64,000 nt of DNA from Mytilus californianus. Taxonomy: Eukaryota. Under the pieces are notes generated by a model. That model had not been told where the DNA came from, did not search any database, and worked only from the letters and a program-made list of their open reading frames with translations. The DNA lies in contig NW_026262604.1 in NCBI RefSeq assembly GCF_021869535.1, positions 46,004,001 through 46,068,000 on the forward strand, written 5' to 3'. Shown in pieces: positions 13,436 through 60,168 of this stretch; the stretch's first letter is position 1, and the number at the start of each line of letters is the position of its first letter. A program made the translations under genes and the position numbers.

Positions 13436-15494
13436 GAATGTTGTGCATGTTAACATTATTCGTAAGTTATGATAATTTGACCAGTTTGTCATCAAGAAAT
13501 AGACATCATGCAGTCAACATTATCAAGGCCAGGTGAAGTTGTATGAATAAAATCGTGATTTCATAGCGGATTTGCGTTGTAGAAAAACAGAACAAGTTCA
13601 AATTAACTAGGATAAATCTATTCTAAATATATAATACAATTTGTTTCATGAGTCAGTTTTCACCTGCTTGAAAAATAAAATAAAATGTATAATTACAATG
13701 GAAACAAGGGTGCCTTTTGATTTATCCAGTGTTCGACCAATCAGTTAATATCATAGTGTTTTAAATGGGTGTTTCTATTGATCCTGTATTACGTTCAGGT
13801 ACAAGTATTGGGTCGAGGTAAGCTGTAGTGGCACCTTCATTAACAAATAACTTAAAATAATCACCAAAAACTAACTGAAGATGAACATGACCGTAAGAAG
13901 ACTCATGCAGAATCAAAATGAACTATTTGGGTTAATTATCATTTTAATTCAAGGAATGTCGAATTATCCTTAGAAGTAATATTATGCGATGAATTATCCT
14001 TTTATTTGCCTGGTAAATAACTCCTTATTGTCTTTTGAGCCTTATCGACTTTTACACATTATCTCCCGTCAAAATGACGTCACTGACGTATGTAAACAAA
14101 ATGGCAACGGCCAGGTGAGAAGTCCATGGACTAGAGTGACGAAGAAACAAGTATTTGAAATCCATCTGGTACCAAGGATAGCTTTCATAAAATGCGCTTT
14201 TCAGAGCCATCATTTGTTATATATATGAGGCATTTTAAGTCACAAAACAATTCTCTGACGTAAGTGTTTTGACAATTTGTTCCTACAGTAAGACATGTAC
14301 AAGAGTGTCTTTAACATTTATGTTCAATGAACGAAAGGCCCTTTGGCATATTTTGAGCGTGACAAATGAACTGATTCCTCGAAAAACCAATTGCCGTCCT
14401 TTAATAGGTAATTGATTAATCTTGGTTTTACTACAATTTATCGAGTAAAAGAGTTAAAAAAGATAAAATTAATGCGGATTTCATCAAGTGCACTCAACTG
14501 TCAATAAGAGAGGTACAACATAATGAGAATCTATGCTACTAAGTAATGCATGTCGATGATTGTAGACGAAGGACGTTAAATTATTCATGGCTTACAAGAC
14601 TTAGTGTTATATATAATCTTACAAACAAGCATGTGTGAAGGCTGACAAGTCTCGTATATATAAAGATGAATCTTAAAACAATTTACACCTATCATATTTG
14701 CTTTAGTTCATGTTGTAGACTCTTCTCCTAATGGCTTCTCAAGTTAATGGTTCGAATGTGGTCTTCGAAGAAGGGATTGCTAATTTTTCCAACTCCTTGT
14801 ATAGCAAACTAGACAGAGCTGGAAATGAATTCATTTCGCCATACAGTATCACGTCAGCATTGTAACTCCTGATGCTTGGAACTGGCAAAACGACTGAAAA
14901 CCAGATAAAGTCGGTAATTTTTGAATATGAAGAACCAAATGATATCAACCAGGGATATAAACTTCTTAATGATGAACTCTTAACGAGAACAACATCGGGA
15001 GTTGCATTGTCTATTGCAAACAGGTTATACGGCAGTAAGAGTCTAAATCTTTTGAACTATTTTTCTTCGAAAGCGTCTTCATACTATGGCAGTAATGTTG
15101 AATTATTAGATTTAGTATCGGAGGCGGAGAAATGACGATTGACAATAAATGATTGGATTTCCACAAATACAAACAATCTAATAAAAGATATGATTCCGAG
15201 AAATGTTCTTTGTTCAAACACACTATTAGTAATACCAAATGCTATGTATTTATAAAGGTTACTCGGGAACACGTGTATTTGTTTACTTTTAACACGTGTG
15301 TTTAAATCAAAACATGTTTATGTTTAATTTGATTGGACCATCAGTAAGTTATTACCGGTTTAAGTTATATCAATCATGATAACTTCATGCTAGAATTTTA
15401 GCGCTAAAATTATAATAAGATATCTAGAATTGTCATTCGAGGTTCGCCTATCCGACAGAAAGGTTCGTTTTTTCTTAAATCGCCACTTGGTAAA

Positions 15495-16271
15495 ATGTCC
15501 GAATCTTCTCCACGTCTGGAATTGAATGAAGACATACTACTCGAAGGAGATAATAGTTTACCGCCACCTAATATTCATAAAGCAGCTGATAAGTCGTCTG
15601 ATTTGGTAGATACTGTAGAGCTTTTTAAGACAATTTTAGACAGCAAGTTAGGTGAGTTGAAATCTGAACTCATACAAGAACAAGATTGCCTTAAGAGAAA
15701 AATTAAGGAGGACGTCACTCTAAAATTTAAGGGGGAAGGAAACAGAATTCAGTACACCTTTAACGAGGAATTATTAGACACTGTTAATAAACTTTCAAAA
15801 TTCATCCCTAACTCCAATACTCAAGCCTATAGATTAGTTCTTGACATAACTGATAAGATCAAAAGCCGTAATAAGAAAATACGCATAGCTGATGCTTCCC
15901 CTGCTGGTTGGGGAACCGTTAGGGAATACGAATCCAATGCCGTGGCTTCAGATTCTGAAGATGAGAGAAAGATACGACAAGCTGAGACCAGAGCTATCCG
16001 TACCTCCAAGGAGAAGTCAAAATCTCGCCAGCAACCTTACCCAAAAAATCCGCCTCGTCAACAACCTGCGGAATCTTATGGTAACCCTGCTTACGCTCAG
16101 CATTATCAACGTAATCAGCAACAGCCCTTTCGTGGGAGCTTCGCAAGGCGTGAGCCTTGCTCAATCGACACGTGCCACTACTGCAAGCAACAAGGCCACT
16201 GGAGAAAAAACTGTCCTCTTCTCGCCAGTCTCAGGTCATCCAACAGCAACTCCACAACCTACCAGAAGTAG
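15495..16271 (+). CDS. gag: Gag-like protein (258 aa) with CCHC zinc knuckle
   Basis: CHYCKQQGHWRKNC, plus the ADASPAGWGTVREYE...DSEDERKIR block typical of DIRS-group gag. Confidence 0.9.
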   Translation: MSESSPRLELNEDILLEGDNSLPPPNIHKAADKSSDLVDTVELFKTILDSKLGELKSELIQEQDCLKRKIKEDVTLKFKGEGNRIQYTFNEELLDTVNKLSKFIPNSNTQAYRLVLDITDKIKSRNKKIRIADASPAGWGTVREYESNAVASDSEDERKIRQAETRAIRTSKEKSKSRQQPYPKNPPRQQPAESYGNPAYAQHYQRNQQQPFRGSFARREPCSIDTCHYCKQQGHWRKNCPLLASLRSSNSNSTTYQK

Positions 16272-18327
16272 TAAAGTAGGGCCTGAACGTCACTCTCCAG
16301 TCATTGTGAATGATAAGTATTTAGACACTATTAATGACCAATTTTCTACATGTTTTGTTGATAACGATTATATAGAATCTTTTTTAGATCAAGTTCAATA
16401 TTTTGAAAATTGTCAGTCATATGATAAATTTAAAGGGGTGAAAGGTAGATTAGCTTGTCATGTAAAGTATTGGGAAAATATAGGTGCTTGTCCTTTTGTG
16501 CTTGATACAATAAAAAATGGTTATGTTATTCCATTTATAGATACACCTTTTAAAATGTACCACAGAAATAATAGATCAGCACGGCAGAATACTGAATTTG
16601 TCACAAAGTCAATTGAAGATTTAGTTCAAATAGGTTGCGTAATTAAAGTGCCTTTTCAACCATATGTGGTAAATCCATTGAGTGTTGCTACTCAAAAGTC
16701 CGGTAAGAAACGACTTATTTTAGATATGAGTCAATTGAATAAACACATAAAGCGCGAAAAAATAAAATTTGAGGATTGGAAGTTAGCTATACAATATTTT
16801 GACAAAGATATGTATCTGTTTAAGTTTGATTTAAAATCTGGTTATTTTCACTTAGACATATGCTCACAGCAACAGACTTTCTTAGGTTTTCAGTGGGAAG
16901 GTCAATTTTATTGCTATACTGTTTTAGCTTTCGGAATTACTACCGGTCCGTACATTTTTACTAAATGTTTGAGGCCACTAGTAAAATTTTGGCGTGGAAA
17001 CGGTATAAAAGTTGTTTTGTATTTAGATGATGGATTTGGCATGAGTCCAGATGAAAATACATGTAATGAGCAATCGTCCTTCGTAAAAAGGTCTTTGATT
17101 GATGCTGGTTTCCTTATTAACGAGGAGAAGTCTGTTTTTAAACCTGTTACCGAGTTAGAATGGTTGGGAATAGTTTGGAACTCGAAAGAATACAAATTAT
17201 CTATTACTCAACGTCGAGTTGACGATTTGATTTTCTCATTGAATGTAATTTTGGCTAAATTTCCCTATGTTACAGCTAGATCTTTAGCTCAGGTTGTAGG
17301 TAGAATTATTTCTATGACTCCCGTAATCGGAAATGTGGCTAGAATTATGTCAAAGTTCTGTTACATGGAAATTGAAAGTAGAATTGGGTGGGATATTCTC
17401 ATTACAGGGTACAAACCCGTCGAGGTTTTATCAGAGTTAAAGTTCTGGTTAGAAAATGTCACCATGATTAACTATCGTAATTTATGTCATTACAGTAAAT
17501 CTTCTGTTGTCATATACTCAGATGCTAGTAATATTGCCGCTGGTGCATACACCGTTGAATTAGAAAATAAGATTTTCCATAAGATGTGGACATGTAGTGA
17601 AACGGTACAAAGCTCCACATGGAGAGAGCTGAAAGCTATAGAGTTGGCCCTTTTTTCTTTTAAGAATAGTTTCACAGGAAAAACTATAAAGTGGTTTACT
17701 GACAATCAAAATTGTGTCAAAATTGTTAATTCGGGAAGTATGAAAGAAAATCTTCATGTTATAGCAAAATCTATTTTTTCATTTTGCATTCAAAAAGGAA
17801 TATCAATTGACATTCAATGGATTCCCAGAAAAGAAAATGAAAAGGCTGATTACATCAGCAAAATGGTTGATTTCGAGGACTGGGGAGTCACACATATATT
17901 TTTCAATTTTTTAAATGATATGTGGGGTCCTTATTCGATTGACAGGTTTGCAAGTGTCGAAAATAGAAAAGTTATGAGATTTAACTCCTTATTTTGGCAA
18001 CCTGATTCTGAAGCAGTTGATGCATTTTCTCAAGTTTGGACCAATGAAAATAATTGGCTAGTTCCACCAATTAATCTTGTGATACGATCGATTAAACACA
18101 TTATAGCTTGTAAAGCTCGAGGCACGTTAGTTGTGCCTAAGTGGATTTCTGCTGCATTCTGGCCTTTGATATTCGATAAACATCTGATTTATCAAGATTA
18201 CGTAAAAGATGTTATTGTGTTTAAAAATACTGATGGTATTTATAAGCAAGGTTCGAATAAGAATACGATATTCGGAATTGAACCGTTTGGTTCGCCAGTT
18301 TTGGCTGTTTTGCTAGATGCATCTTAG
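15892..18327 (+). CDS. pol: Reverse transcriptase / RNase H / Dam-like methyltransferase polyprotein (811 aa; true start uncertain)
   Basis: RT motifs KKRLILD, FDLKSGYFH, LAFGITTGP and YLDD (17020). RNase H motifs YSDAS, WRELKAI, FTDNQN and QWIPRKENEKAD. MT-like tail IDRFAS..N...RFNS...AVDAF..W.....LVPP...LVVPKW...FWP. It overlaps gag by 380 nt in another frame. Confidence 0.93.
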   Translation: MLPLLVGEPLGNTNPMPWLQILKMRERYDKLRPELSVPPRRSQNLASNLTQKIRLVNNLRNLMVTLLTLSIINVISNSPFVGASQGVSLAQSTRATTASNKATGEKTVLFSPVSGHPTATPQPTRSSKVGPERHSPVIVNDKYLDTINDQFSTCFVDNDYIESFLDQVQYFENCQSYDKFKGVKGRLACHVKYWENIGACPFVLDTIKNGYVIPFIDTPFKMYHRNNRSARQNTEFVTKSIEDLVQIGCVIKVPFQPYVVNPLSVATQKSGKKRLILDMSQLNKHIKREKIKFEDWKLAIQYFDKDMYLFKFDLKSGYFHLDICSQQQTFLGFQWEGQFYCYTVLAFGITTGPYIFTKCLRPLVKFWRGNGIKVVLYLDDGFGMSPDENTCNEQSSFVKRSLIDAGFLINEEKSVFKPVTELEWLGIVWNSKEYKLSITQRRVDDLIFSLNVILAKFPYVTARSLAQVVGRIISMTPVIGNVARIMSKFCYMEIESRIGWDILITGYKPVEVLSELKFWLENVTMINYRNLCHYSKSSVVIYSDASNIAAGAYTVELENKIFHKMWTCSETVQSSTWRELKAIELALFSFKNSFTGKTIKWFTDNQNCVKIVNSGSMKENLHVIAKSIFSFCIQKGISIDIQWIPRKENEKADYISKMVDFEDWGVTHIFFNFLNDMWGPYSIDRFASVENRKVMRFNSLFWQPDSEAVDAFSQVWTNENNWLVPPINLVIRSIKHIIACKARGTLVVPKWISAAFWPLIFDKHLIYQDYVKDVIVFKNTDGIYKQGSNKNTIFGIEPFGSPVLAVLLDAS

Positions 18328-18635
18328 ACATGGCCCTAATATATATAGATATATTTTAGCAGGCATGGTCTGTTTGTGACATGGCCCTAATATATATATA
18401 GATATATTGTAGCAGTCATGGTCTGTTTGTGACATGGCCCTAGTATATGTATATTGTAGCAGGCATGGGTGTTTATGTTGACATGGCCCTAGTATCGGTA
18501 ATGATATTGTAGCAGGCTTGGTTTTTTATTTGACATGGCCCTAGTATCTATAATGATATTTTAGCAGGCATGGTAATTTGTTTTACAGTTTATGGCCCTA
18601 GTATCTATAAAGATATTGTAGCTGGCGTTGAAATA
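18328..18635. repeat. Six ~50-bp tandem units (ACATGGCCCTA..GATATTKTAGCAGGCATGG) between pol and YR
   Basis: Units start at about 18328, 18380, 18432, 18481, 18533 and 18591. Two conserved boxes alternate with variable AT-rich linkers. Confidence 0.85.
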
Positions 18636-18740
18636 TTTGAATATATATTATATTTTACTGTGTATAGAAATCTGAAATATGCTAATAATTCGTCCTCTGT
18701 ATATGTATATAAAATGTTATTGCAATTTTACGTTTTTCAG

Positions 18741-19756
18741 ATATTTTTTCAGTAGGACATTGGTCAGACTTTAATTCACAAGTTGCCTCTAATAATGATC
18801 TCAGCAGTTTGTTCAAACAGTTACCAGAATTCCTTCTTTCGTCCAAGGCTGCGAGTACTCAGAAGAAATATAGATATGCCTTCAATTCATGGTGTAAGTG
18901 GACTAGTCAATATTCTTTTTCACCATTGCCAGCATCTCATTTACATATTTCTTTATATTTAATTCATTTGTCTGAAACTGCAAAATCGGTTTCAAAATTA
19001 AATGATGCTTTTTACGCCATAAAATGGGCACATAAATTAGCTGGCGTTGCTGATCCCAGTGAAAATAATCTAGTTGCATCTGTTCTTGAAGGGGCTCATA
19101 GAAAAATAGGTCATTCAGTTGTCAAAAAAGAACCTATCACACCGCATATTTTGAAAAATATTGTATGTAAATATGCTAATAATACTTGTAATTTAAAAGA
19201 TGTAAGAATAGCATGTATGTGTTTATTAGCCTATGCTGGCTTTTTAAGATTCTCCGAGTTAGCTAACTTGAGAAGGTCTGATATACAGTTTTCCCCTACT
19301 TACCTTACACTTCATTTAGTCAAGAGTAAAACTGATGTATATAGGGAAGGGAAAGATGTTGTCATTTCAAAAACAGGGAATATTACATGCCCGGTAGATG
19401 TACTTCAGCGTTATCTAAAGTTAGCTAACATTCCTGAAGAATCGAATGATTTTATTTTTAGATCTATTTGTTATTGTAAATCTTTGAATATATACAAACT
19501 TAGAAAGAGTAGTCATATTTCTTACACCAGAGCCAGAGAGTTATTGTTATCTGCACTTGACAGTTTAGGTCTTGATAAAAAACAGTTTGGCTTACATAGT
19601 TTGAGGTCAGGAGGAGCTACTGCCGCGGCAGAAGCTGGAATAGATGACCGGTTGTTTAAGAAACACGGGAGATGGAAAAGTGATAAAGCCAAAGATGGTT
19701 ATGTTAAAGAGAGTATACTCAACAGATTGTCAGTATCTAAGAATTTAGGATTGTAA
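18741..19756 (+). CDS. Tyrosine recombinase (YR) of the retroelement; probably a spliced 3' exon
   Basis: The frame is open from 18713 to 19756 and carries LRFSEL, HSLRSGGA and GRWKSDKAKDGY (R-H-R-Y tetrad). There is no in-frame ATG before ...ACMCLL. The track start at 18809 is TTG. A TTTTTCAG acceptor ends at 18740. Confidence 0.9.
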
Positions 19757-22700
19757 TTTATATTGTTTGTCCCCCCTTTTTCTTTATGTCCCTTTCTTTA
19801 TCAATCGAAGCTTTCTGTGCTGTCGGGGCGAGCTGATAACCAAAAACTGTGTTGAGTTTTTACTTTGTAAATGCTTTATGTTCGTTTGAAGTATTGAATA
19901 AGAACATAAATGTATTTATAAAGGTTACTCGGGAACACGTGTATTTGTTTACTTTTAACACGTGTGTTTAAATCAAAACATGTTTATGTTTAATTTGATT
20001 GGACCATCAGTAAGTTATTACCGGTTTAAGTTATATCAATCATGATAACTTCATGCTAGAATTTTAGCGCTAAAATTATAATAAGATATCTAGAATTGTC
20101 ATTCGAGGTTCGCCTATCCGACAGAAAGGTTCGTTTTCCCACCCACCCACCCCTTTTATTAAGACTTCATAGGAATGTGAATCAGTATGTTATGTAGAAA
20201 ATAGTTGATAAAATACATGTATGTAAATCGAAATGATTTTTTCTTCAACTTATAGAACATTTTTCTATTGTAGATTGTGTTTATATGTGATGGCAGCGGT
20301 CGATGACAGCAAATTGGACATTTGTTTATTGTTTATAATAAAAATAAGCTTTCTGTGCTGTCGGGGCGAGCTGATAACCAAAAACTGTGTTGAGTTTTTA
20401 CTTTGTAAATGCTTTATGTTCGTTTGAAGTATTGAATAAGAACATAAATTTATTTTAAAGGCACATGGAAAAAAGAATTTAACGCAAATGGCACTTCACA
20501 AAGGAACTTTTTCGTGAGAGCGAACGAGCAAAAACTAGTTCAAATGATGTACGGTGAATTTGATGTAAAGTCTGGTGAAGACCTTACACTTGACTGCAAA
20601 CTTTTACAACTGCCATATCAAGGAAACAAGGTCTCTATGATCATTGTTTGGCAAAATTCTGGTGATGAACTCTCCGAACTAGAAAGTAAATTTACTTCGG
20701 ATAATTTCAAGACTCTTGTAAGCGGCATGAAGACACAAAAGACAATAGTACGAATTCCTAAATTTACAATGAAAAGCGAGTACGATTAAAAGCCAATTTG
20801 TACAGCGTTAGGAATAACGGAAATCTTTGACAAAAAATGCTGACTTTAGTGAAATGCTAAAAGCTGATGTTACACGCGTGCACGTTACTGATGCTCGTCA
20901 TAAAGCTTATCTTGAAGTGAACGAAGAGGGGAGCGAAGCAGCAGCCGCTACTTTGTTATCTGTATCATTTACTTCAGCAAGGATTCCTGAGCCCCAGCCA
21001 TTCCAATTTGTTGCCGATCATCCTTTCTTGTTTGTGATTCAAGATGACAAAACAGGAATACCGCTGTTCATTGGAAGGTATGCCAGGCCATAATTTCACA
21101 GTAACATATTTTTGAATGAAAACAAATGCGTACTGATCAAAATTAATTAGAACCTGTTATATATTAATCAAGTACTTGACTTTACGCAAAGATTTTTACG
21201 AAAGTGTATACATATCTGTCTTAATATACACATTGTGCACATGTAGGTTTTTATACCTATCTGTGTGGATACACACCTTGGTTTTTGTATAACTAAATAC
21301 TTTATATTTGAATAATTTTGGATATTTTTGTAATGATCTGTCTGTAAATAAACACTAATAAAAAGTTAGTTTGTGGTTTCAAATCTTTAGTAAAACATAA
21401 ATGTTGCTTTTCCTTGAAGTTTGTTTTATTTGATTTTTTTCTCATAATGTTTGTTTGCTTTCTCAGTATCATAAGCATCAAAAGCCGTGGTCCTGTTTTG
21501 TATGGAATTATGTTTAATGTGCCATATATCTATTGATATAGGTTGATACATGGATAGAAAATCAGATCTACGATATCCTTTTTGAATACCCTGCGATGGC
21601 CATGCGTCCACATCGTAAGACAACCTAAGTTTCTATTTAGATTGTGATAATTTCAAAGGAGACAAGCAATATTAGAAGGAAAATTGAATTAAAATAGACG
21701 GCAACCATGCCATGACAGCATGTTATAAATAATAAACAGGAGGCAGCAAGAAAATTTTGGGAAATATGGGGCTTTATTGTCCTGAATATTGCAAAAAGCA
21801 CTGAGAGCAGCAGGGTGAAATATGTTTTGAAGATTTTATGCCACAATCTTATTTTTTAGATCAAAATAGGCATACTCTGTTTATGTCCGAAGTTATTCTA
21901 CCACTTGGTGTTTAAAATGATATGGATTTTTAACCTTCTTTATCTACATCACTAGAACAAACTCAAACAGGAGTTACAAACACAGCTAGCGCATCAGATT
22001 TATCGCGACAAAATTTTTCTTTGACATGAAATTTTATTATACAATAGTAAATGGATTTAAGTCTTAAATGGTAAATTTTATGTTAACAACATCTGAAAAG
22101 TCTGAATAATGAATTACTCAGTCATATTCAGTCGTTCGGTCAATTTGTAGAAGACATGTCGACAGCAGTTAATTTAGTACTGCTCATAAAATGCTTGCAG
22201 TCAATTCAGTATTTTGTAAATGTGTACATTTAAATCACAATTACTGAACCATCTGAACATAGACTGAACATATCTTAAGTGACAGCACGCAAATTGTCTG
22301 AACAGTAGTGAAATAACTGCAGTGCATCCGTCTGAAAATTGAACTAAATGATTGACAATTATTTCATAAAAGATAGGCGAAAGATACCAAATGGACATTC
22401 AAACTAATAAGTTGAAAATAAACTGATAACGCCATGGCAAAAAAGGGAAAAAAAGACCAAAAGACAAACAACAGTACACAAAACACACTACGAATTTTAT
22501 TTTTCGGTCTTTTAAGAACTGTTTATATCACGCTTACTGTTTCAGATAAGATTGGACTACTAGTGGCTATATTATGTAATACGTCTACGCATCTTCACAT
22601 GAATAATGAAAAAAATACCAACTGAAACGATTTCACAATATCAATACGACAGTAAGATTTATTTAGCAAACTGAAAAGATACTTACACATTATTTTCTTT

Positions 22701-22919
22701 CTTAACAACAATAGTAGAGACAAAAACATAGAGTAATAACTAATGTTTAGTATACCTTATCAAATAGTTAGGTAGACAATTCCGACAAACTTGAGCGCAC
22801 TGTTATATGTTACCCAATTTGTACGTTGATGTTTTGTGAGAATGTTATCAGTGACAAATATTTGCATGTTTCCAAGTCTTCAGAATAAGGAAACCAACCC
22901 AAATAAGTTCAATTTTGAA

Positions 22920-23300
22920 ATCACAAACATGCTTAACCCTGCCAAATGTGCCCGTCCCAAACCTTGAGCATGAAATCCACTTGTTGTCATTAGTTAGTCT
23001 CTAAAATGTTTTCATGTACTTTTTTCGTATAAATCGGCCATTGGTTGTTTTCTACTGTTTTACATTTTGTCGTCCCATCGACTTTGGATTCACAAACATG
23101 GTTTACCACGCCAAAGATGTCGTCCCAAACCATAAAGATGTCGTCCCAAACCATAAAGATGTCGTCCCAAACCCTGAGCATAAAATCCACTTGTTGTAAT
23201 TATTAAATGTCTGCAAAATATTTAAAATACTGTTTTCGTATAGATCGGCTATCATTTTTTTAACTTTTATACATTTTGTCGCCTTTTGTCATCTCAAAGC
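22920..23300. repeat. ~170-200-bp spacer tandem units (paralogous blocks at ~46490-46860 and ~52130-52700) with an internal 21-bp x3 repeat at 23113-23173
   Basis: CAAACATGTTTAACCCCGCCAAATGTGCCC... recurs 2, 2 and 3 times in the three spacers. AAAGATGTCGTCCCAAACCAT x3 occurs only here. Confidence 0.75.
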
Positions 23301-25149
23301 CTTTTATAACTTACAATACGGAAGAGTATTGTTCATTTTTGAAGACCGTACGGATCTGTAGTTTTTCGTAACCTGGTCATGTGTTGTTTACTTGAAATTA
23401 GTCTATTTCGCAATTGTTACACATCTCCTTATTTTCACATTAATTATTATATACGCCTACATACGTGTCCGTCCACACATGTTTGATCGTTGTGCATGTT
23501 AATTCGTAATAGATGATAAGTTAACTTATTTTATTTTAATTGTTACCAGTTTTTCATCAAGAAATAAACCACATGCAGTCAACATTGTCAAGGTTAGGTG
23601 AAGTTATAATAATAAAGTCGTGATTTCATACCGGATTTGCGTTGTTGGAAGATAGGTCACGCTCAAAATAGCTTTAAAACTATTCTAAATATGCAATACA
23701 GATTGTTTTCGTGAATCAGTTTCTACCTTTAATGAAAATTTAAAGAAATGAATAACAACTGGAAACAAGGATGCCTTTCGATTTATTCAGTCTTTGATTA
23801 ATCAGTTATGATTCATTCGTATTAATAACATTGGAAGTTCAATCCGTTGATACGACTATTGATATGCTGCAATCTCAAAAACCATTCAAATAGTAATTTC
23901 GTCTCTGCTACGTCTCACCTGACTTATCTGATGATTTAAACGCTTTCAAAAATAATTTTAACGGCTCGATTGTTCATCATCAATGAAGAAATCGCTCGTC
24001 CATTCTCTAACTTTTACAGATTGACTCTCAGTATAACCCAAAACTACGTATTCGGGCTACTTGTGAATTTTTTGTACGAATTCTCTTCTGAAGAAAAAAC
24101 GATGATAATACAAAGTAAGATGGTAAGATATCGTATCGGCGGGTTTATCACTTTTCGTTTACTAAATGCGAGCATCCTTTTTTGTGCTTGTATTTGCGTT
24201 TTTTATTTTTTTTTTTATTATTACTTTTGAGTGTCGGTATAATAAAAGTAATTCCTTTTCTGTATAAATGTGTATGGTATGCTTTGTTATATTTGTTTTT
24301 GTTATTCCAGTATTCCGAGTATAAAAGACTTATTGATGCTATCTAAACAACTAGTTAAACATAACACAAGCTTATTACCTTGTTCAACGTATTGAATTTT
24401 GTAAGTGGTTGTATAAAGCTATAACTTAATGGCTTTTAATTCTCTTCAGACATGTGAAGTAGAAGGCACCTGTTGATTCATGTCACGTTATTCACAATTT
24501 TTTAAATTTGGGACGAGTTAGTATTTTACGAAACATGAAACTGTTGATATATTGAAATATTATTAAGTGAACATTCATTAATGATCAAGCAACCTTAACA
24601 GACTAGTGTCTGTACGAAACATGTACTTGAATGGTTTTACCATGTTTATAGAAACTTGTGTTGTGTTAAAGGCCACATGTTTGACCTATAGATATCTTCC
24701 TCCGGTTTTAATGTCGATGGATGTTAACTTATCTTAACAGATACACAACAATAAGAAAACATAAAACAATACCAAAAAAACTTAAGGCCAAAGCAATTTG
24801 AAAACAAAACTGTACAAATGTGATTTGCATAATACGTCATGAGACAAGGATAACTGTATTCTACTTATTAGCGGACAATTTAGTAATAAGTTTGTGCATT
24901 TTTTCATTCTTGCCATATAAGTTAATAATATACATTACGGTGACTTGCTTCTACGTTCATTGTCCAATGCCTTAGTTGATTTTCGCCCCTTCTTTTTATT
25001 AAGATCACGCAACTTTCAACAACAGACGTACAACATAATGTGAATCTAAGCTATGAAGTCACAGGTCACTGATTGTAGACATATAGTTTTGAGGAGGACG
25101 TTAATTATTTCATGGCTTACAAGTGTTATATATATTCTTACAAACAAAC

Positions 25150-25190
25150 ATGTGTCAAGGCTGACAAGTCCAGTATATATACAGATGCAT
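25150..25190 (+). promoter_or_regulatory. Putative core promoter of serpin B: TGTCA-N4-TGACA palindrome plus TATA-like box
   Basis: TGTCAAGGCTGACAAGTCCAGTATATATA lies ~60-85 bp upstream of the ATG and is conserved upstream of all six copies. Confidence 0.55.
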
Positions 25191-25238: not shown

Positions 25239-26399
25239 ATGGCTTCTCAGGTTAATGGATCGAATGTGGTCTTCGAAGAAGGGATTGCTAATTTTTCCAA
25301 CTCCTTGTATAGCAATCTAGACAGAACTGGAAATGAATTCATTTCGCCATACAGTATCACGTCAGCATTGTTACTCCTTATGCTTGGAACTAGCAAAACA
25401 ACTAAAAACCAGATGAAGTCGGTAATATTCGAATATGAAGAACCAAATGATATCAACCAGGGATATAAACTTCTAAATGATGAACTCTTAACGAGAACAA
25501 CATCGGGAGTTACATTATCTATTGCAAACAGGTTATACGGCAGTAAACGTCTAAATGTTTTGAACACTTTTTCTACGAAAGCGTCTACATACTATGGTAG
25601 TGCTATTGAACTTTTGGATTTTGTGTCGCAGGCGGAAAAATCACGACTGACAATAAATGATTGGATTTCAAACAATACAAACAACCGAATTAAAAATATG
25701 ATTCCAAAAGGTGTTCTTAATGCAAATACTTTATTTGTAGTAGTAAACGCTATATATTTTAAAGGTATGTGGAAAACAGAGTTCAACAGGAATAACACTA
25801 CACAAAGGAACTTTTTCGTGAGAGCGAATGATCAAAAGCTGGTTAATATGATGTACGGTGAGTTTGATGCAATGTCTGGTGAAGATCTTTCACTTGACTG
25901 TAAGGTTTTGCAACTACCGTATAAAGGAAACAAGATCTCTATGATCTTTGTTTTGCCAAATTCTGGTGATGGACTCTCGGAACTAGAAAATAAACTTTCC
26001 GTGGATAATTTCAAGACACTTGTAAGCGGTCTGAAGACACAGAAGACAATAATAAGAATTCCCAAATTTACAATGACAAGCGAGTACGATTTAAAGCCAA
26101 TTTGTACGGCGTTAGGTTTTACGGAAATCTTTGACGAAAAAATTGCAGACTTTAGTGAAATATTCCTAGCTAATGAAACACGCGTGCGCGTGACTGATGC
26201 ACGTCATAAAGCTTACATTGAAGTGAACGAAGAGGGAAGCGAAGCAGCAGCTGCTACTACAATTACTATTGGAGTGACTTCAATACAGGATCCTAAACCC
26301 CAGCCATTTGAGTTTGTTGCTGATCATCCCTTCCTGTTTGTGATTCAAGATGACGAAACAGGAATACCGCTGTTCATTGGAAGATATGCCAGGCCATAG
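25239..26399 (+). CDS. Intact intronless serpin B (386 aa, intracellular/leukocyte-elastase-inhibitor-like)
   Basis: Motifs ISPYSITSAL, NAIYFKG.W, LPY.G, IPKF, hinge EVNEEGSEAAAAT and signature [13 protein letters not shown]. No signal peptide. RCL TITIGVT-SIQD. Confidence 0.95.
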   Translation: MASQVNGSNVVFEEGIANFSNSLYSNLDRTGNEFISPYSITSALLLLMLGTSKTTKNQMKSVIFEYEEPNDINQGYKLLNDELLTRTTSGVTLSIANRLYGSKRLNVLNTFSTKASTYYGSAIELLDFVSQAEKSRLTINDWISNNTNNRIKNMIPKGVLNANTLFVVVNAIYFKGMWKTEFNRNNTTQRNFFVRANDQKLVNMMYGEFDAMSGEDLSLDCKVLQLPYKGNKISMIFVLPNSGDGLSELENKLSVDNFKTLVSGLKTQKTIIRIPKFTMTSEYDLKPICTALGFTEIFDEKIADFSEIFLANETRVRVTDARHKAYIEVNEEGSEAAAATTITIGVTSIQDPKPQPFEFVADHPFLFVIQDDETGIPLFIGRYARP

Positions 26400-26630
26400 T
26401 TTAACAGTAACATGTATTTGACATTGATTTTGAACAAAAATAGTATAAAATATGTACCAGAAATATTGGTTATTTTTATTTTTACATTTATAAAATTGAA
26501 CAGTTATTGACATGCATAAATAATTTCCTGCTCAGATAGAAAAATAAACGCTATACATTTAGATCTGCTTTACCTGACATGTTGTTTAATTTGTTTTGTT
26601 TCTTATGATGTTTGTTTGCTTTATCTGTCC

Positions 26631-26808
26631 TGAACAAAAATGAAGCAAAGCAACAGCTCCTACTACGATAACTGTTGGAAGGATTACCTCAGTACGGGAA
26701 CCTAAGCCCCAGCCATTCCAGTTTTTGGCAGATCATCCTTTCCTGTTTGTGATTCAGGACGACGAAACAAGAACACCGCTGTTTATTGGAAGACATGCCA
26801 GGCCATAG
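26631..26808 (+). pseudogene. Orphan serpin RCL/C-terminal remnant B'
   Basis: Translates as ..[52 protein letters not shown]. It starts abruptly at the degenerate VNEEGS codons, with no upstream serpin body. Confidence 0.9.
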
Positions 26809-31037: not shown

Positions 31038-32269
31038 ATGGCTTCTAAGGTTAAACAATCGAATGTGATCTTCGAACAAGGGATAGCTAATTTTTCCAAC
31101 TCCCTGTATAGCAAACTAGACAGAACTGGAAATGAATTCATTTCGCCATACAGTATCACGTCAGCATTGTTACTCCTTATGCTTGGAACCGGGAAAACGA
31201 CCAAAACCCAGATGAAGTCGGTTATTTTCAAATATCAAGAACCAAATGATATCGACCAGGGATACAAACTTCTTAATGACGAACTCTTAATGAGAACAAC
31301 AACCGGAGTTACATTATCTATAGCAAACAGGTTATACGGCAGTAAGCATCTTAATCTTTCGAACACTTTTTCTACAAAGGCGACTACATATTATGGCAGT
31401 GGTATTGAATTCTTGGATTTTAAAACGGAGACGGAAAAGTCACGATTGACAATAAATGATTGGATTTCCACAAATACAAACAATCGAATTAGAAATATGA
31501 TTCCAAAAGGTGTGTTTAACGAAGATACTTTATTAGTAGTAGTAAACGCTATTTACTTTAAAGGTACGTGGAAAAAAGAGTTCAACAAGAAAGACACTTC
31601 ACAAAGAAACTTTTTCGTGAGAGTGAATGATTGAAAGCTAGTTCAAATGATGTATGGTGAATTTGATGCAAAATCTGGTGAAGACCTGACACTTGACTGC
31701 AAGGTTTTACAACTGCCATATCAGGGAAACAAGATCTCTATGATCTTTGTTTTACCAAATTCTGGTGATGGACTCTCAGAACTAGAAAGTAAACTTACCA
31801 CGGATAATTTCAAGAAACTTTTAAGCGGTTTGAAGACACAGAAGACAATGATACGAATTCCCAAAATTAAAATGACAAGCGAGTACGATTTGATACCAAT
31901 TTGTAAAGCGTTAGGTTTAACAGAAATCTTTGACGCAACAAATGCGGACTTTAGTGGAATATTCCAATCTAACGAAATACGCGTGTGCGTGACTGATGCA
32001 CGTCATAAAGCTTATATTGAAGTGAACGAAGAGGGAAGCGAAGCAGCAGCTGCTACTGCGATAACTGTTGGATTTAGAACAACATCAGTAAAGGATCCTA
32101 AGCCCCAGCCATTTCAGCTGCTACTACGATAACTGTTGGAAGGATTACTTCATTACAGGAACCTGAGCTCCGGCCATTCCAATTTGTTGCAGATCATCCT
32201 TTCCTGTTTGTGATTCAGGACGACGAAACAAGAACACCGTTGTTCATTGGAAGATATACCAGGCCATAG
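31038..32269 (+). pseudogene. Serpin pseudogene C with two RCLs in tandem (second RCL, C', at 32115-32269, out of frame)
   Basis: In-frame TGA at codon 199 (31632). RCL1 AITVGFR-TTSVKD is fused to ..[29 protein letters not shown]...GRYTRP* in another frame. Confidence 0.92.
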
Positions 32270-45801: not shown

Positions 45802-48800
45802 GATCTTAACAACATTTGAAGAGTCAGACGTTTGGTCAATTTTAAGACATGTAGACAGCGGTAAATTCAGTACTCCTCAGACAAGCGGTTTGCCATCCAT
45901 TCAGTACTTTTCAAATGAGTCCAGTTACTGAACAACTAATGAACCATCCTAACATAGACAGCACAGATCTTAAATTGAATGCAATGAAATTGTCTTAGCA
46001 GTAGTGAATTTACTGCAGTGGATCAATCTGTAAAATTGACTACTATTTGAGAACAATTTAGATCAAAGTTACCGTTTCATATTAAATTTGGTTTACTAGT
46101 GGCTTAATAATACCATTTACAAAAACGTTTCCACACCTTCACATGAATAATGAAAAATATAAGACGTAAACAGATTTAACAATATCAATATAACAATAAG
46201 CTATGTCAAGATTAGTTTATTTAGCAAACTGAAAAGATACTTTAATAACTTATCTTTCTTAACAACAATAGCAGACAGAAACAAATTGTGTAGTAACTTA
46301 CTTTTGGTATACCTTATCAAATAGTTGGATAGCTGATGCCGACAAACTTGAGTGTAGTGTTATATTTTACCCAGTTTGTAAGTTGCTGTTGCCATGGTTA
46401 CGTGAGAATCTTATCAGTGACCAATATTTGCATGTTTCCATATCTTAAAAATAAGGAAACCAACCCAATCAAGTTTAAGTTTGAGTTCACAAACATGTTT
46501 AAACCAGCCAAATTTGCCCGTCCAAAACCGTGAGCCTGAAATTAACTTTTTGTCATCAGTTACTGTCTGCAAAATATTTTCAAATACTTTTTTTGTATAA
46601 ATCGGCCATTGTGTGTTTAACTGATTCACGTTTTGTCATCCCGTGCCCTGTTATAACTTATTATACAGTCGAATTTTAGTTTGAGTTCCCAAACATGTTT
46701 AACCCCGCCAAATGTGCCCATCTCACACCATGAGCATAAAATCCTCTTGTCATTAGTTACTGTCTGCCATAGTATATCATTTTCTGTTTTCGTATAAATC
46801 GATCGTTATTTCTTTTTTCAAACTGTTTCACATTTGTGTCATCTCATGGCCTTTTCTAGCTTACTTTACGGTCGAGTTTTGTTCATTTCAGGAGACCGTA
46901 CGGTTACCTGTAGTTGTTTGTACCCTGCTCATTTGTTGTGTAATTGAAATTTGTCTATTTCGCAATTATTACACATCACTAATTTTCATATTAATTATTC
47001 TATACGCCTACATAAGTGTCCGTCCACACATGTTTAATTGTTGTGCATGTTCACTTTATTCATAATAGATGATAATTCAGCTTATTTTAATTGTTGCCTG
47101 TTTTTCATCAAGAAATAAACCACATCGGTCAACATTGTCAAGGGCCGGTGAAGTTGTAAATAAAAATTGTGATTTCGTACTGGATTTGCGTTATAGGAAA
47201 TCAGGTCAAGCTCAAATGAACTTTAAAACTATTTTAAATATAAAATACAGATCGTATTCGTGAATCTGGTTTGACCTTTCTTGAAAAGTATAATAAGGAT
47301 GGAAACAAGGATGCTTTTCGATTTATCCAGTCGTTGATCAATCAGTTAATATAGATTTGTATTGTTAACATTGGAAATTCAATCCGTTGAGTAATGATAT
47401 GCTGCAATCTCCAAAAACAGTAAGATGGTAAGACATCGCATCGGCGGGTTTAAAATAATGCGAACATTCTTTGCTTTTTGTCCTTGTATTTGCGTTTTTT
47501 TTTTTTTTTTGATTTGTTGATTTTTTACTTTAGAGTACCGGCGTAATAAAATAAATTCCTTATCTGTACAAACTTGTATAGTATGCTCTATTATACATGT
47601 AATATGTGTTTGTGTTATTCCAATGATCGAGCTTAAAAGACTTAGTGATGTGATCTAACTTGCTAAAACCTTACACTAGCTAATTATCTTGCTCAACGTA
47701 TTTAATTTTGTAAGTGGTTGTGTGAAGTTAAAACTCAATGGCTTCTAATTCCCTTCAGAACTTTGATGTAGAAGACAGATGTTGATTCGTGTTATGTCAT
47801 TCATAATTCTTTTAAATTTGGGGCAAGTTAGTATTTTACGAAACATGAAACTGTTAATATATTAGCACATTATTAAGTGAAGAGGAGAAATCAACCCAGC
47901 ATAACAGACATTTAGAGGTAAAAATTGGTCTTCAATAACAGGCTAGTTTCTGTACCAAACATGTATTTCAAGCTCGTAGGTGATAATCATGTGTATAGAC
48001 ACTTGGCCTATGTATAAGACCACATATTGACCTCTAGGTATCTTGTTGCGCTTTTTATGTCAATGTGTGTTAATTTCACTTAACAGATCTATACAATACA
48101 ACAAAACAGCATAGAGTAAAAACAATAAAAATTCATAGGCAAAGAAATGTGAAAAGCAAAACTGTTCAAAGGAGATTTTTACAAATCGTCATCTGACAGG
48201 GATGACTGTATGCTACTCATTAACGGATAATTAAGTAGTTGTTCTGTGATGTTTGCATTATTTGAATAGAAAGTAATAAATATACATCAAAGAGAACCTG
48301 ATTTAACTTTCATTATGTATTTGATCATTTTCATAGTTGATTTTCGCTATTGCATGACCAGTATTCCTTTAAATGGGACGTAATAGTCTGCCAATTTTAT
48401 TTCTTAAAGTCATATATTTATAAAATTAATTCTTGAATTAGTCCTGGTTGTTTTGTGATGACCCATTATGAATTCAAAAAATGTATAGTAAATCACAAGA
48501 TACTGTATTGCATTCAATTCTTTTAGTGTTTTCAAAATATGGTGCTTAGTCTGCTCGCCAAACTAATCCCACGCACCTGAAAGTTGTGTTTACACTACTG
48601 TGTCAAATTACCTATATACATGTAATACAAGCGTAGAAAAATGGACTGATTCCTCAGTAACCGAATGCTGTCCTTTAATAGGTAATTGAATAATCTTGTT
48701 TTTACTACAATTAATCGAGTAAAATTGATGAGGTTTTTATTAAGTGCATGCAACTGTCAACAAGAGAAGTACAATATAATGAGAATCTAAGGTACGAAGT

Positions 48801-48974
48801 CATACGTGTCACTGATTGTTAACATATTGCTTTGCGAAGGATGTTAATTAATTCGTGGCTTACAAGTGTTATATATTCTTACAAACAAACAAGTGTCAAG
48901 GATGACAAGTCCAGTATATATAGAGATGCATCTTAAAACAATTTACACATATCATATTTGCTTCATTTCATTTA

Positions 48975-50119
48975 ATGGCTTCTCAAGTTAATGGATCGAA
49001 TGTGGTCTTCGAAGAAGGGATTGCAAATTTTTCCAACTCCTTGTATAGCAAACTAGACAGAACTGGAAATGAATTCATTTCGCCATACAGTATCTCGTCA
49101 GCATTGTTACTCCTTATGCTTGGAACCGGGAAAACGACTAGGAACCAAATGAAATCGGTTATTTTCGAATATGAAGAACCAGACGATATCGACCAGGGAT
49201 ACAAACTTCTTAATGATGACCTCTTAATGAGATCAACAACGGGAGTTACAGTATCTATTGCAAACAAGTTATACGGTAGTAAGCGTCTAAATCTTTTGAA
49301 CACTTTTACTACAAAGGCGTCTGCATACTATGGTAGTGATGTTGAACTCTTGGATTTTGTAACAGAGGCGGAAAAGTTACGATTGACAATAAATGATTGG
49401 GTTTCCACAAATACAAACAATTGAATTAAAAATATGTTTCCAAAAAATGTTCTTGATGAAAATACTTTATTAGTAGTAGCAAATGCTATTTACTTTAAAG
49501 GTACGGGAAAAAAGAGTTCAACAGGAATGACACTACACAAAGGAACTTTTTCGTTAGAGCGAATGAGCAAAAGCTGGTTAATATGATGTACGGTGAGTTT
49601 GATGCAAAGTCTGGTGAGGACCTTTCCCTTGACTGTAAGGTTTTACAACTGCCATATCAAGGAAACAAGATCTCTATGATATTTTTGTTGCCAAATTCTG
49701 GTGATAGACTCTCAGAACTAGAAAGTAAACTTACCACAAATAATTTAAAAACACTTGTAAGTGGTCTAAAGACGCAGAAAACAATAATTCGAATTCCTAA
49801 ATTTACAATAAAAATTTTTATAGCGTTAGGTTTAACGGAAATCTTTGACGAACAAATTGCGGACTTTAGTGAAATATTCCAATCTAATGTAACACGCGTG
49901 CGCGTGACTGATGCACGTCATAAAGCTTATATTGAAGTGAACGAAGAGGGAAGCGAAGCAGCAGCTGCTACTGCGATAACTGTTGGATTTAGAACAACAT
50001 CAGTAAAGGATCCTAAGCCCCAGCCATTTCAATTTGTGGCACATCATCCTTTCCTGTTTGTGATTCAGGATAATGAAACAGGAATGCCGCTGTTTATTGG
50101 TAGATATGCCAGACCATAG
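48975..50119 (+). pseudogene. Serpin pseudogene E
   Basis: TGA at codon 150 (49422; CGA>TGA-type), a 1-nt frameshift near 49505 and a 7-codon deletion after PKFT. RCL AITVGFR-TTSVKD. Confidence 0.95.
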
Positions 50120-51796: not shown

Positions 51797-53382
51797 TACA
51801 AGTTGTAAAAAGATTAAACAATATCAATGTAACAATAAGCTTTATAAAAATTAGTCTATTTGGCCGATACTTACACAAAATCTACAACAGTTACTGAAAA
51901 CTACAATAGCAGACAGAAAACAAATAGTGTAATAACTAACGATATAGGTAAAAGTATACCTTATCAAAAAGATTGGTAGACAATGCGGACAAACTTGAGT
52001 GTAGTGTTATATTTTACCCAGTTTGTAAGTTGCTGTTACGTAAGAATCTTATCAGTGACCAATATTTGAATGCTTTCAAATCTAAAAAAAAATGAGGAAA
52101 CCAACCTAAGCAAGTTTAAGTACGAGTTCACAAACATGTTTAACCCCGCGAAATGTGCCCGTCCCAAATCATGAGCCTGACATTTACTTTTTGTCATTAG
52201 TTATTGTCGGCAAAACATTTTCAATTACTGATTTTGTATAAATCGGCCATTGGTTTTTCTTAACTGTTTCACGTTTTGTCATCCCATGACATGTTATAGC
52301 TTACTATTCTGTCGAGTTTTACTTTGAGATCACAAACATGTTTAATCCCGCCAAATGTACGCGTCCCTAACCATGAGCCCGATATTAACTTTTTATTAGT
52401 TACAGGCTGTAAAATATTTTCAATTACTGTTTTTGTATAAATCGGCCATTGTGTTTTTGACTGTTTCAAATTTTATCATCTCATGGCCTGTTAGAGCTTA
52501 CTATACGGTCGAGTTTTAGTTTGAGTTCACCTTCATGTTTAACCCCGTCAAATGTGCCCGTGAGCATACAATCCGCTAGTAGTCATTAATAAATGTCTGC
52601 CAAATATTCTCATTAACTGTTTTCGTAAAAATCGGTCATTGTTTTTTTTTCTTCATTTGTATTTTGTCATCGCATGTTCTGTTATAACTTACTTCACGAT
52701 CACGTTTTGTTTATTTTTGAAGACCATACTAATACCTGTAGTTGTTCGTACACTACTCATTTGTTGTTTAATTGAAATCGGTCTATTTAAAAATCATTAC
52801 ACATCTCCTTATTTTCATACAAATTATTCTATACGCCTACATAAGTGCCCGTCTACACATGTTTGATTGTTGTGCATGCTCACATACTTCGTAATAGATG
52901 ATAAATTAACTTATTTTAATTGTTATCGGTTTTTCATCAAAACACAAACCACATAGGGTCAACATGGTCAAGGCCAGATGAAGTTGTAATAATAAAATCG
53001 TGATTTCATACCGGATTTGCGTTGTAGGAAAACAGGTCAAGCTCAAACTAGCTTTAAAACTATTCTAAATATACTATCGGTTTTCACCTTTCGTAAAAAG
53101 TTTCAAAAATGTAAAATTAAGGTGCCTTACGATTTATCTAGTCTTCGATCAGTGAGTTAATATGCATTTGTACCAATAACATTCAATCCGTCGATCGTTG
53201 TGGAATATGCTGCAATCTTCAAAAATATTTTAAACGGCTCGATTTTTCATCATAAATAAAGAAATCTCTCGTCCATTCCCTAACGTTTACAAATTTACTA
53301 TCAGTATAACTCAAAACGACGTGTTCCGGCTATTTTTGACGTTGCTGTACAAAATCTATTAAGAAGTATAACCTTTTATATA

Positions 53383-58335: not shown

Positions 58336-58483
58336 ATACTTCAATTAGTCCTGGTTATTTTGTGATGATTCATTTTCAGTTTAAACTTTATGGTAAATCA
58401 AAAGATAATTTGTTTCGTTCAATTCTTACAGAGTTTCCAAAATATGGTGCTTACTCTGCTCGCCAAACTAATCCCACATACCT

Positions 58484-58637
58484 GATAGTTGTATTTACAC
58501 TACTGTGTCAAGTAACCTAGATACATGTAATACAAGAGTAGAAAAATGGACTGATTCCTCGATAGTTGTATTTACACTACTGTGTCAAGTAACCTAGATA
58601 TATGTAATACAAGAGTAGAAAAATGGACTGATTCCTC
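58484..58637. repeat. 77-bp direct tandem duplication in the serpin F upstream region
   Basis: GATAGTTGTATTTACACTAC...GGACTGATTCCTC x2 with one mismatch. It is single-copy upstream of E. Confidence 0.9.
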
Positions 58638-59007
58638 GATAAACCAAATACAGGCCGTCCTTTAATAGGTAACTGAATAATCTTAGTTTTACTACAATTA
58701 ATCGAGAAAATAAAATTAATGACTTTTTTTAAATGCACTCAACTGTCAACAAGATAAGAAAACATAATGAGAATCTTAGCTACTGAGTCATACGTGTTAA
58801 TAGTGGTAGACATATTGACGAAGAATGTTAATTAATTCATGGCTTACAAGCTATATATACATGCATATTCTTATAAACAAACATGTGTCAAAGCTGACAA
58901 GTCCGGTATATATAAAGATGCACCAATTCCCCATTTCCATTCTCAATTTTACCGTAAACAAATTTACTACTATCATACTTGCTTTATTTCATCTTGTAAG
59001 CTCTTAA

Positions 59008-60168
59008 ATGGCTTCTCAGCTTAATGGATCGAATGTAGTCTTCGAAGAAGGGATTGCAAATTTTTCCAACTCCTTGTACAACAAATTAGACAGAACTGGA
59101 AATGAATTCATTTCGCCATACAGTATAACGTCAGCACTATTACTCCTTATGCTTGGAACCGGCAAAACGACTAGGAACCAGATGAAGTCGGTTATTTTCG
59201 AATATGAAAAACCAGATGATATCGACCAGGGATACAAGCTTCTTAGTGATGAACTCTTGACGAGAACAACAACAGGAGTAAAATTATCTATTGCAAACAG
59301 GTTATACGGCAGTAAGAGTTTAAATCTTTTAAGCACTTTTACTACAAAGGCGTTTGCATACTATGGTAGTGATGTTGAACTCTTGGATTTTGTAACAGAG
59401 GCGGAAAAGTCAAGATTGACAATAAATGATTGGATTTCCAAAAATACAAATAATCAAATTAAAAATATGATTCCAAAAAATGTTCTTAATGAAAATACTT
59501 TATTAGTAGTAGCAAACGCTATTTACTTTAAAGGTACATGGAAAAAAGAGTTCAACAGGAATGACACGAAACAAAGGAACTTTTTCGTGAGAGCGAATGA
59601 GCAAAAGCTGGTTAATATGATGTACGGTGAGTTTGATGCAAAGTCTGGTGAAGACCTTTCACTTGACTGCAAGGTTTTACAACTGCCATATAAAGAAAAC
59701 AAGATCTCTATGATAGTTGTTTTGCCAAATGCTGAAGATGGACTCTTTGAACTAGAAAGTAAACTTACCATGTATAATTTCAAAACACTTGTAAGCGGTC
59801 TGAAGACACAGAAGACAATTATTCGAATTCCCAAATTTACAATGTCAAGCGAGTACGATTTGACGCCAATTTGTAAAGCGTTAGGTTTAACGGAAATCTT
59901 TGACGAAAATATTGCGGACTTTAGTGAAATATTCCAGCCTAATGTAACACGCGTGCGTGTGACTGATGCACGTCATAAAGCTTATATTGAAGTGAATGAA
60001 GATGGAAGCGAAGCGACAGCTGCTACTACATCAACTAGTGGATCAACTGCAATACAGGATCCTAAGCCCCAGCCATTTCAATTTGTGGCAGATCATCCTT
60101 TCTTGTTTTTGATTCAGGATGACGAAACAGGAACACCGCTGTTCATTGGAAGATATGCCATACCATAG
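59008..60168 (+). CDS. Intact intronless serpin F (386 aa)
   Basis: Full serpin motif set, about 85% aa identity to B by manual count. Hinge/RCL EDGSEATAATTSTSGST-AIQD. Confidence 0.93.
   Translation: MASQLNGSNVVFEEGIANFSNSLYNKLDRTGNEFISPYSITSALLLLMLGTGKTTRNQMKSVIFEYEKPDDIDQGYKLLSDELLTRTTTGVKLSIANRLYGSKSLNLLSTFTTKAFAYYGSDVELLDFVTEAEKSRLTINDWISKNTNNQIKNMIPKNVLNENTLLVVANAIYFKGTWKKEFNRNDTKQRNFFVRANEQKLVNMMYGEFDAKSGEDLSLDCKVLQLPYKENKISMIVVLPNAEDGLFELESKLTMYNFKTLVSGLKTQKTIIRIPKFTMSSEYDLTPICKALGLTEIFDENIADFSEIFQPNVTRVRVTDARHKAYIEVNEDGSEATAATTSTSGSTAIQDPKPQPFQFVADHPFLFLIQDDETGTPLFIGRYAIP

Follow-up and report, generated by a model that had tools for sequence, protein, structure and literature searches.

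A tandem array of PILP-B1/MSP22.8-family serpins in Mytilus californianus with gene death, gene conversion and a fast-evolving reactive-centre loop

Results

The window analysed here is a 64,000-nt stretch of the Mytilus californianus genome (JAKFGE010000012.1, 46,004,001-46,068,000, assembly GCA_021869535.1; all coordinates below are window positions), with about 33% G+C and zero N, which holds a tandem array of serpin genes. A tblastn search with the protein of gene B revealed six full-length-type copies (A to F) and two 3′ remnants (R and R′), all on the + strand, and a more sensitive repeat of the search with four queries found no further serpin pieces in the window. Two copies are intact and encode 386 aa each, as established from the open reading frame (ORF) and the Pfam match: gene B (25239-26399), with the reactive-centre loop (RCL) TITIGVT-S and the hinge EEGSEAAAAT, and gene F (59008-60168), with the RCL TSTSGST-A and the hinge EDGSEATAAT. 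RCL strings are given as P7-P1 and P1′ under the 17-residue convention, P17 being E331 of B. The other four copies are pseudogenes, mapped by tblastn and by their lesions: A, split into a 5′ part (14731-15244, codons 1 to about 174, its junction read directly) and a 3′ part (20449-21093, RCL LLSVSFT-S); C, of which the body occupies 31038-32116 (codons 1-358, RCL AITVGFR-T); D (39893-41035, RCL TLTIALT-S); and E (48975-50119, RCL AITVGFR-T). The remnants share the loop TITVGRI-T; R (26617-26808, B codons 325-386; tblastn and lesion map) lies downstream of B, and R′ (32117-32269, B codons 337-386; tblastn) is joined to C. B and F are 84% identical (326/386) without a gap. The original prediction for this locus had named six full-length-type copies, with B and F intact and A, C, D and E broken, an amino acid identity of about 85% between B and F, and a set of P7-P1/P1′ strings; the tblastn search and the lesion map bore out the inventory, the measured identity agrees with the estimate, and every quoted string was reproduced.

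The repeating unit, which takes in about 250-400 bp upstream of each serpin and a variable downstream stretch, recurs every 5.8-10.5 kb. Three more serpins (one at 47% identity, one at 73% and one partial) lie 4-25 kb upstream, in a 21-kb stretch ending 3.9 kb before the window, and the array described here is therefore a portion of a larger cluster. No serpin was found within 6 kb past the window end, and one further serpin is located about 490 kb from the array. The corresponding arrays of other mussels hold four copies in M. galloprovincialis, at least three in M. edulis and two in M. trossulus, compared with six copies (two intact) and two remnants in M. californianus. Copy 1 of both M. 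galloprovincialis and M. edulis has an N-terminal extension in which the first 20 or so residues are tandemly repeated (SN-x-x-FEEG-x-x-NFS motif three times), giving a protein of 427 aa.

Both intact proteins match the Pfam Serpin family PF00079 almost from end to end (B, model positions 3-370 of 370, E 5.8e-108; F, 3-368 of 370, E 8.1e-107). B matched 200 serpin sequences in the PDB at E<=1e-3 (best 2e-70), with 37-40% end-to-end identity to solved serpins including SERPINB3, and the alignment to SERPINB3 reaches the last residue, leaving no N- or C-terminal extensions. The penultimate Ser (...SP) of ov-serpins is absent, B ending in ARP and F in AIP where SERPINB3 ends in SSP. The hinges of B and F follow the inhibitory consensus (P17 Glu, P15 Gly, P14 Ser/Thr and short side chains at P12-P9), and P17, P15, P13, P12 and P10 are invariant in the 12 family proteins compared, 10-12 of which also conserve three N-glycosylation sequons. 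From the serpin core and the hinge, B and F are most likely suicide-substrate protease inhibitors. No cleavable N-terminal signal was seen in the array proteins by hydropathy, the only measure used (Kyte-Doolittle mean -0.05 over residues 1-15). An AlphaFold2 model of B from an 18-sequence alignment was too poor to interpret (mean predicted local distance difference test score 61, predicted template-modelling score 0.65).

Promoter and polyadenylation motifs frame each intact gene. The TATA box of B (25174-25181, + strand) lies 65 nt upstream of the ATG, within a proximal block of about 250 bp conserved among the paralogues and across four Mytilus species, and that of F (58907-58914, + strand) lies 101 nt upstream, a 29-bp insertion separating it from the ATG. 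The AATAAA of B (26543-26548, + strand) follows the stop codon by 144 nt, where the block in common with F ends, and that of F (60316-60321, + strand) by 148 nt. A TATA box some 65 nt from the ATG leaves little room for an intron in the 5′ untranslated region (UTR), and the coding sequence together with the promoter/poly(A) layout fits truly intronless genes; the earlier description of these serpins as intronless thus holds for the coding sequence, the 5′ UTR being judged only from the TATA spacing. In the otherwise intact copy 3 of M. edulis, about 240 bp have been inserted downstream of the conserved TATA box and before the ATG; this is probably a small transposon within the 5′ UTR.

All four pseudogenes carry multiple lesions, listed here in B-codon numbering. 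Copy A is interrupted by stops at codons 45, 135 and 285, has lost 2 bp at codon 302 and is split by a 5.2-kb insertion at codon 174/175. In C the stop is at codon 199 (window 31632), a 71-bp restart of the hinge and RCL follows at codon 345, and at codon 358 the copy runs out of frame into R′, which supplies a second hinge, RCL and C-terminus. D combines a stop at codon 142 with four frameshifting indels of 5, 7, 1 and 7 bp, and E combines a stop at codon 150 with the loss of 1 bp at codon 178, a 21-bp deletion that keeps the frame and 6 additional bp in the RCL. The ORF pieces of broken copies were searched separately, and codons containing a stop or a gap were left out of all computations. 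Scaffold dN/dS (omega) is still 0.23-0.44 in pairs that include a pseudogene, as against 0.22 for B-F, indicating that most of the divergence arose under constraint and that the deaths are recent.

R stands by itself as a copy of the final 62 codons (hinge, RCL and C-terminus) with a stop upstream, and it is followed by a downstream flank of the F type (26642-28316 resembles 60005-61656); R and R′ are sisters. Insect serpins with mutually exclusive RCL exons, such as Manduca serpin-1, likewise place a second hinge/RCL/C-terminal cassette downstream of the body, as R does after B and R′ on C, and we considered whether the two remnants are alternative 3′ exons of this kind. This was rejected on four counts. 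The hinge of B lacks a GT donor; in R a stop closely precedes the cassette and a polypyrimidine tract is missing; cassettes of this type are absent from the M. galloprovincialis, M. edulis and M. trossulus loci; and 8 of 48 residues are different between R and R′, a level near that of their DNA divergence. R and R′ are duplication relics.

The RCL is the least conserved part of the family, as had been proposed, and its length differs by whole codons (C and E +2, R +1), again in line with the prediction. Among the 12 family proteins, the most variable 11-residue segment is residues 341-351 (P7-P4′), with a mean pairwise difference of 0.62 against 0.19 overall, the next most variable segments scoring 0.54 and 0.48. 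Variation is concentrated at P6, P4, P3, P2 and P2′-P4′ (0.6-0.85), with P8, P1′ and P5′ nearly fixed. P1 is Thr or Ala across the family, apart from two more distant members with Arg, and P1′ is Ser in almost every case; in the array both intact genes have Thr at P1, and the Arg and Ile variants occur only in dead copies. At the DNA level, B nt 1011-1080 form the lowest-identity bin in nearly every pair.

Substitution rates were estimated with our own GY94 likelihood, because the codon models of IQ-TREE dropped 33 absent codon states from the 11-codon RCL partition; the implementation reproduced the IQ-TREE fit of the scaffold (lnL -4416.79, omega 0.188). Against this scaffold omega of 0.188, the RCL gave 0.56-0.63 over P8-P3′ (p = 9e-4 to 1e-8 versus 0.188, p = 0.12-0.23 versus 1), 0.48-0.54 over P8-P5′ (p = 2e-6 to 2e-9 and 0.04-0.09, respectively) and 0.73-0.81 over P7-P1′, the span quoted in the original prediction (p = 6e-4 to 9e-4 and 0.46-0.65, respectively). 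The comparison that had been named beforehand, loop against scaffold, therefore came out as expected (0.5-0.8 versus 0.19), with all RCL estimates below 1. The non-synonymous rate of the RCL is 3-4 times that of the scaffold and compatible with neutrality, and positive selection is not demonstrated.

Phylogenetic analysis pointed to a mosaic history. In the whole-gene tree, the copies of the M. edulis complex form one clade (support 100) with 1:1 orthologues between M. galloprovincialis and M. edulis, A and D form a second clade (98), and the grouping of B, C, E and F is loose. Trees of the gene thirds conflict: in the third that holds the hinge, RCL and C-terminus, A and D group with copies 1 and 2 of M. 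galloprovincialis and M. edulis (support 80). The RCL alignment strongly prefers the topology of this third over that of the scaffold (lnL -210 versus -225), and the RCL of D, TLTIALT-S, is of the type common to copies 1 and 2 of the two other species.

Shared tracts were assessed by a run test on polymorphic sites, in which the observed tract was reached by no permutation in eight pairs (p<0.0005, the Bonferroni level for 102 pairs) and four further pairs fell at exactly p=0.0005. Significant tracts were found between C and E (nt 950-1072), between Mgal_2 and Mgal_3/Mgal_4 in M. galloprovincialis, and in others; one tract shared across species, by D and Mgal_1, covers nt 1014-1045, the RCL. 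C and E are identical over 130 nt (C 31987-32116) spanning the RCL (permutation P<5e-5), with about 15% difference elsewhere, and the tract stops exactly at the breakpoint of C. The identity of B and E falls from 96% to 80% right at the hinge. The sequences indicate that, within species, scaffolds are homogenised by gene conversion, which has also transferred at least one RCL cassette, and that at least two RCL types existed before M. californianus separated from the M. edulis complex. The array had been described as evolving by birth and death. The tandem paralogues, the pseudogenes and the lineage-specific copy numbers agree with that model, but the description is incomplete, since gene conversion is pervasive in the family and the paralogues have not evolved independently, without concerted evolution, as the model supposes.

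The best named relative is PILP-B1 of M. coruscus (UniProt A0A0K0YAZ2 / AKS48146), to which F is 90.4% and B 85.2% identical over 386/386 residues without gaps. The M. galloprovincialis antigen MSP22.8 is a PILP-B1-like serpin secreted by mantle-edge cells, an extrapallial-fluid and shell-matrix protein that was undetected in haemolymph and haemolymph haemocytes (PMC5623705). The matching transcript was reported in mantle and was negative or very weak in stimulated haemocytes, the band pattern was unchanged by alkaline treatment, no partner protease was found, and the authors proposed that the protein shields the matrix from proteolysis, possibly with a part in defence (PMC5623705). A serpin is also present in the shell proteome of M. 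edulis (PMC5854119). Like B and F, PILP-B1 and MSP22.8 are 386-aa serpins without a signal peptide, with the same hinge and C-terminus, and single-exon in related genomes; the PILP-B1 loop TLTVALT-S is unlike TITIGVT-S of B and TSTSGST-A of F, and the array context and the pseudogenes are described for M. californianus only. Dozens of further serpins of 385-388 aa, 52-58% identical, were found on 1.5-3 kb contigs from metagenome or sequencing-run assemblies, and these are probably transcripts or genomic pieces from other mytilid mussels.

The insertion in A (15245-20448, + strand) was identified from its domains and repeats as a tyrosine-recombinase retroelement of the DIRS order, PAT/Ngaro-like. 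Its direct repeats are split and follow the layout A1...B1A2...B2, where A1 (15244-15471) and A2 (19910-20137) are 100% identical over 228 nt and B1 (19808-19917) and B2 (20346-20455) are 99% identical. A gag-like zf-CCHC ORF (15495-16271), a reverse transcriptase (RT)/RNase H ORF with a weak Dam-like match (15892-18327, RVT_1 E 3e-16) and a tyrosine-recombinase ORF (18809-19756, Phage_integrase E 4e-13) were recognised, together with a tandem array of a repeat of about 53 nt at 18315-18641. No target-site duplication was found at the element junctions, and once the element is removed the two serpin parts join without interruption. RT/RNase H with a tyrosine recombinase, split direct repeats and the missing duplication place the element in the DIRS order; it is young and apparently intact, with all three ORFs open, and may still be active in M. 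californianus. Degenerate RT and recombinase SAM-like domain fragments between D and E (43281-44343, - strand) appear to come from an older element of that order which has since decayed, and Pfam scans of the other ORFs of at least 100 aa found nothing beyond these fragments. In the public annotation, a "Phage_integrase" gene model of 608 aa extends across more than 40 kb of the array (from about 20274 to beyond 64000) and takes in the serpin pseudogenes; it is almost certainly a chimera stitched from retroelement copies.

Other repeats lie around the serpins. Two adjoining 1.4-kb copies (854-2259 and 2280-3685) are 99.4% identical, with no ORF or family match found, and a 280-bp relative is present at positions 17880-18158 of the 21-kb stretch upstream of the window; Tandem Repeats Finder reported nothing over window positions 1-14700. 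A dispersed repeat of about 250 bp occurs at 11946-12197 (+), 12547-12800 (-), 23255-23494, 46796-47045 and 52629-52874 and looks like a foldback element or one resembling a miniature inverted-repeat transposable element; its first two copies form an inverted pair about 350 bp apart, the source of the mirrored ORFs 11931-12338 and 12527-12865.

Discussion

We regard it as probable that the locus is an array of inhibitory serpins of the PILP-B1/MSP22.8 family, probably exported by the mantle, that has been shaped by duplication, gene death and conversion and carries an RCL evolving near-neutrally. Family membership, array anatomy, lesions, rates and conversion tracts were read directly from the DNA, and we infer inhibitory activity, secretion, tissue and targets. 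Each unit is compact and comprises a TATA-box promoter, a 1161-nt ORF and a 3′ UTR of about 150 nt running to the AATAAA. In the protein, cleavage of the exposed RCL would trap the protease as an acyl-enzyme while the loop inserts into beta-sheet A. By analogy with orthologues 83-90% identical to them, B and F are probably exported by the mantle-edge epithelium without a cleavable signal, and they would act in the extrapallial fluid and the shell matrix, guarding matrix proteins against proteases of endogenous or foreign origin. The array itself is the product of three processes: tandem and partial duplication; recent gene death through point stops, indels, microhomology fusion and retroelement insertion; and gene conversion, which makes scaffolds more alike and is able to move an RCL cassette. 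The RCL meanwhile changes near-neutrally, and old RCL types persist.

Several points weigh against this interpretation. MSP22.8 was identified through peptides matching PILP-B1 and not through a gene-specific sequence (PMC5623705), so the secreted protein may be any of several paralogues, and the localisation to shell and extrapallial fluid comes only from other species. In addition, Thr at P1 is unusual for an inhibitor of serine proteases, and the placement of P1 assumes the 17-residue convention. The dN/dS values are drawn from no more than 10 intact sequences, among them three pairs that are almost identical; recombination violates the assumption of a single tree, which is why two topologies were tried; and a partition-wide omega below 1 can conceal a few positively selected sites. 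Finally, the proteins have no N-terminal signal peptide, so that export needs an internal or unconventional signal. Ovalbumin and PAI-2 are exported via an internal signal.

The last point on rates leads to an alternative that we consider unlikely, namely that the serpins are secreted but adaptive, with positive selection at a few RCL sites (P6, P4-P2 and P2′-P4′) against foreign proteases of shell borers, foulers or pathogens where shell and mantle meet, its signal being diluted in the partition-wide omega. The confinement of high variability (0.6-0.85) to P6, P4, P3, P2 and P2′-P4′ between nearly fixed P8, P1′ and P5′ would fit such selection, as would the rise of omega to 0.73-0.81 over P7-P1′, the retention of distinct RCL types across species and the conservation of orthologous RCLs between M. 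galloprovincialis and M. edulis, although the last comparison (dS 0.03) is too shallow to show constraint. The literature also suggests a defensive role for protease inhibitors of the shell. Yet omega exceeded 1 in none of the tests, and four of the six copies are dead in this haplotype, where a strongly selected repertoire should keep more alive. Relaxed constraint on an exposed loop fits the RCL rates as well as an arms race does.

A more distant alternative, and the one put forward in the original prediction, is that the genes encode intracellular immune inhibitors of the haemocyte type (clade-B-like), whose RCLs diverge because of an arms race with the proteases of pathogens. The lack of a cleavable signal peptide, the automated names "serpin B3/B6-like" and "leukocyte elastase inhibitor-like", an RCL that is both the most variable segment and 3-4 times faster in omega than the scaffold, and the loss of four of six copies to pseudogenes all speak for it. 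We nevertheless judge it improbable. Its intracellular part conflicts with the closest characterised relatives, which are extracellular, made by the mantle, undetected in haemolymph haemocytes and at most very weakly transcribed in haemocytes (PMC5623705), and the C-terminus lacks the ...SP of ov-serpins. The similarity of 36-40% to vertebrate clade B is no higher than that to antithrombin or to prokaryotic serpins. Its arms-race part fares no better: no RCL omega estimate exceeds 1 (p 0.04-0.65, every estimate being on the low side), Thr occupies P1 in both intact genes, and the identical loop of C and E reflects one recent conversion event and is not independent evidence. The RCL types are in part common to several species, so they are long-lived and not in rapid turnover. 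An extracellular defensive role is possible; an intracellular role in haemocytes is not supported.

That the array is an assembly artefact, with haplotigs or collapsed or expanded repeats laid in tandem and lesions that are sequencing errors, might be entertained for a highly heterozygous, repeat-rich Mytilus genome in which a 608-aa Phage_integrase gene model spans the array implausibly, but it was rejected as extremely improbable because the copies are 10-20% apart in coding sequence (dS 0.22-0.43, far above allelic divergence) and have separate flanks, every pseudogene has at least one substitution stop, the 1-bp deletion of E lies outside a homopolymer, and comparable arrays occur in assemblies of three other species.

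Within the preferred interpretation of a mantle-exported PILP-B1-family array, the conversion tracts raise a further idea, which we consider improbable: the dead copies and remnants may serve as a reservoir of hinge/RCL/C-terminal cassettes that conversion moves among members, intact genes included, so that specificity is swapped as a module. It is suggested by the recent RCL-spanning tract of C and E, the drop in B-E identity at the hinge, and the persistence of RCL types while scaffolds were homogenised. The chicken immunoglobulin genes, which are fed by pseudogene V segments, offer a loose parallel.

Tandem clusters of conserved serpin scaffolds with faster RCLs, interspersed pseudogenes and scaffold gene conversion are familiar from rodent SERPINA3/SERPINA1 and primate SERPINB3/B4. 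The mussel array shares this pattern with them. It differs in that those genes have introns, classical secretion or cytosolic retention and in several cases an RCL omega above 1, whereas the mussel genes are single-exon with an RCL omega of 0.5-0.8. Vertebrate clade B serpins (SERPINB3, PDB 2zv6; SERPINB1, 4ga7) resemble the mussel proteins in having no N-terminal signal or extensions and in their 37-40% end-to-end identity, and the mussel RCL is like that of SCCA1 in its small and hydrophobic residues, Gly at P3/P4 and Ser at P1′; the mussel serpins differ from clade B in a C-terminus without SP, intronless genes and extracellular relatives. Our literature search found no description of a Mytilus serpin array and no study of RCL evolution in bivalves. 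The locus is a further case of the known pattern of tandem serpins with fast RCLs, and a further case of the mussel PILP-B1 family.

The array provides the genomic context for a mussel shell-matrix and extrapallial-fluid serpin documented until now chiefly by proteomics and an antibody. An easy misreading is corrected as well: the lack of a signal peptide and the "serpin B-like" names hint at intracellular immune proteins where experiments on the relatives indicate secretion by the mantle. With its conserved scaffold, fast RCL and gene conversion it makes a useful, if not surprising, comparison set. Because the serpin belongs to a tandem family in which the bait loop is the main difference between members, identifications of MSP22.8/PILP-B1 by antibody or peptide may pool several paralogues with different targets.

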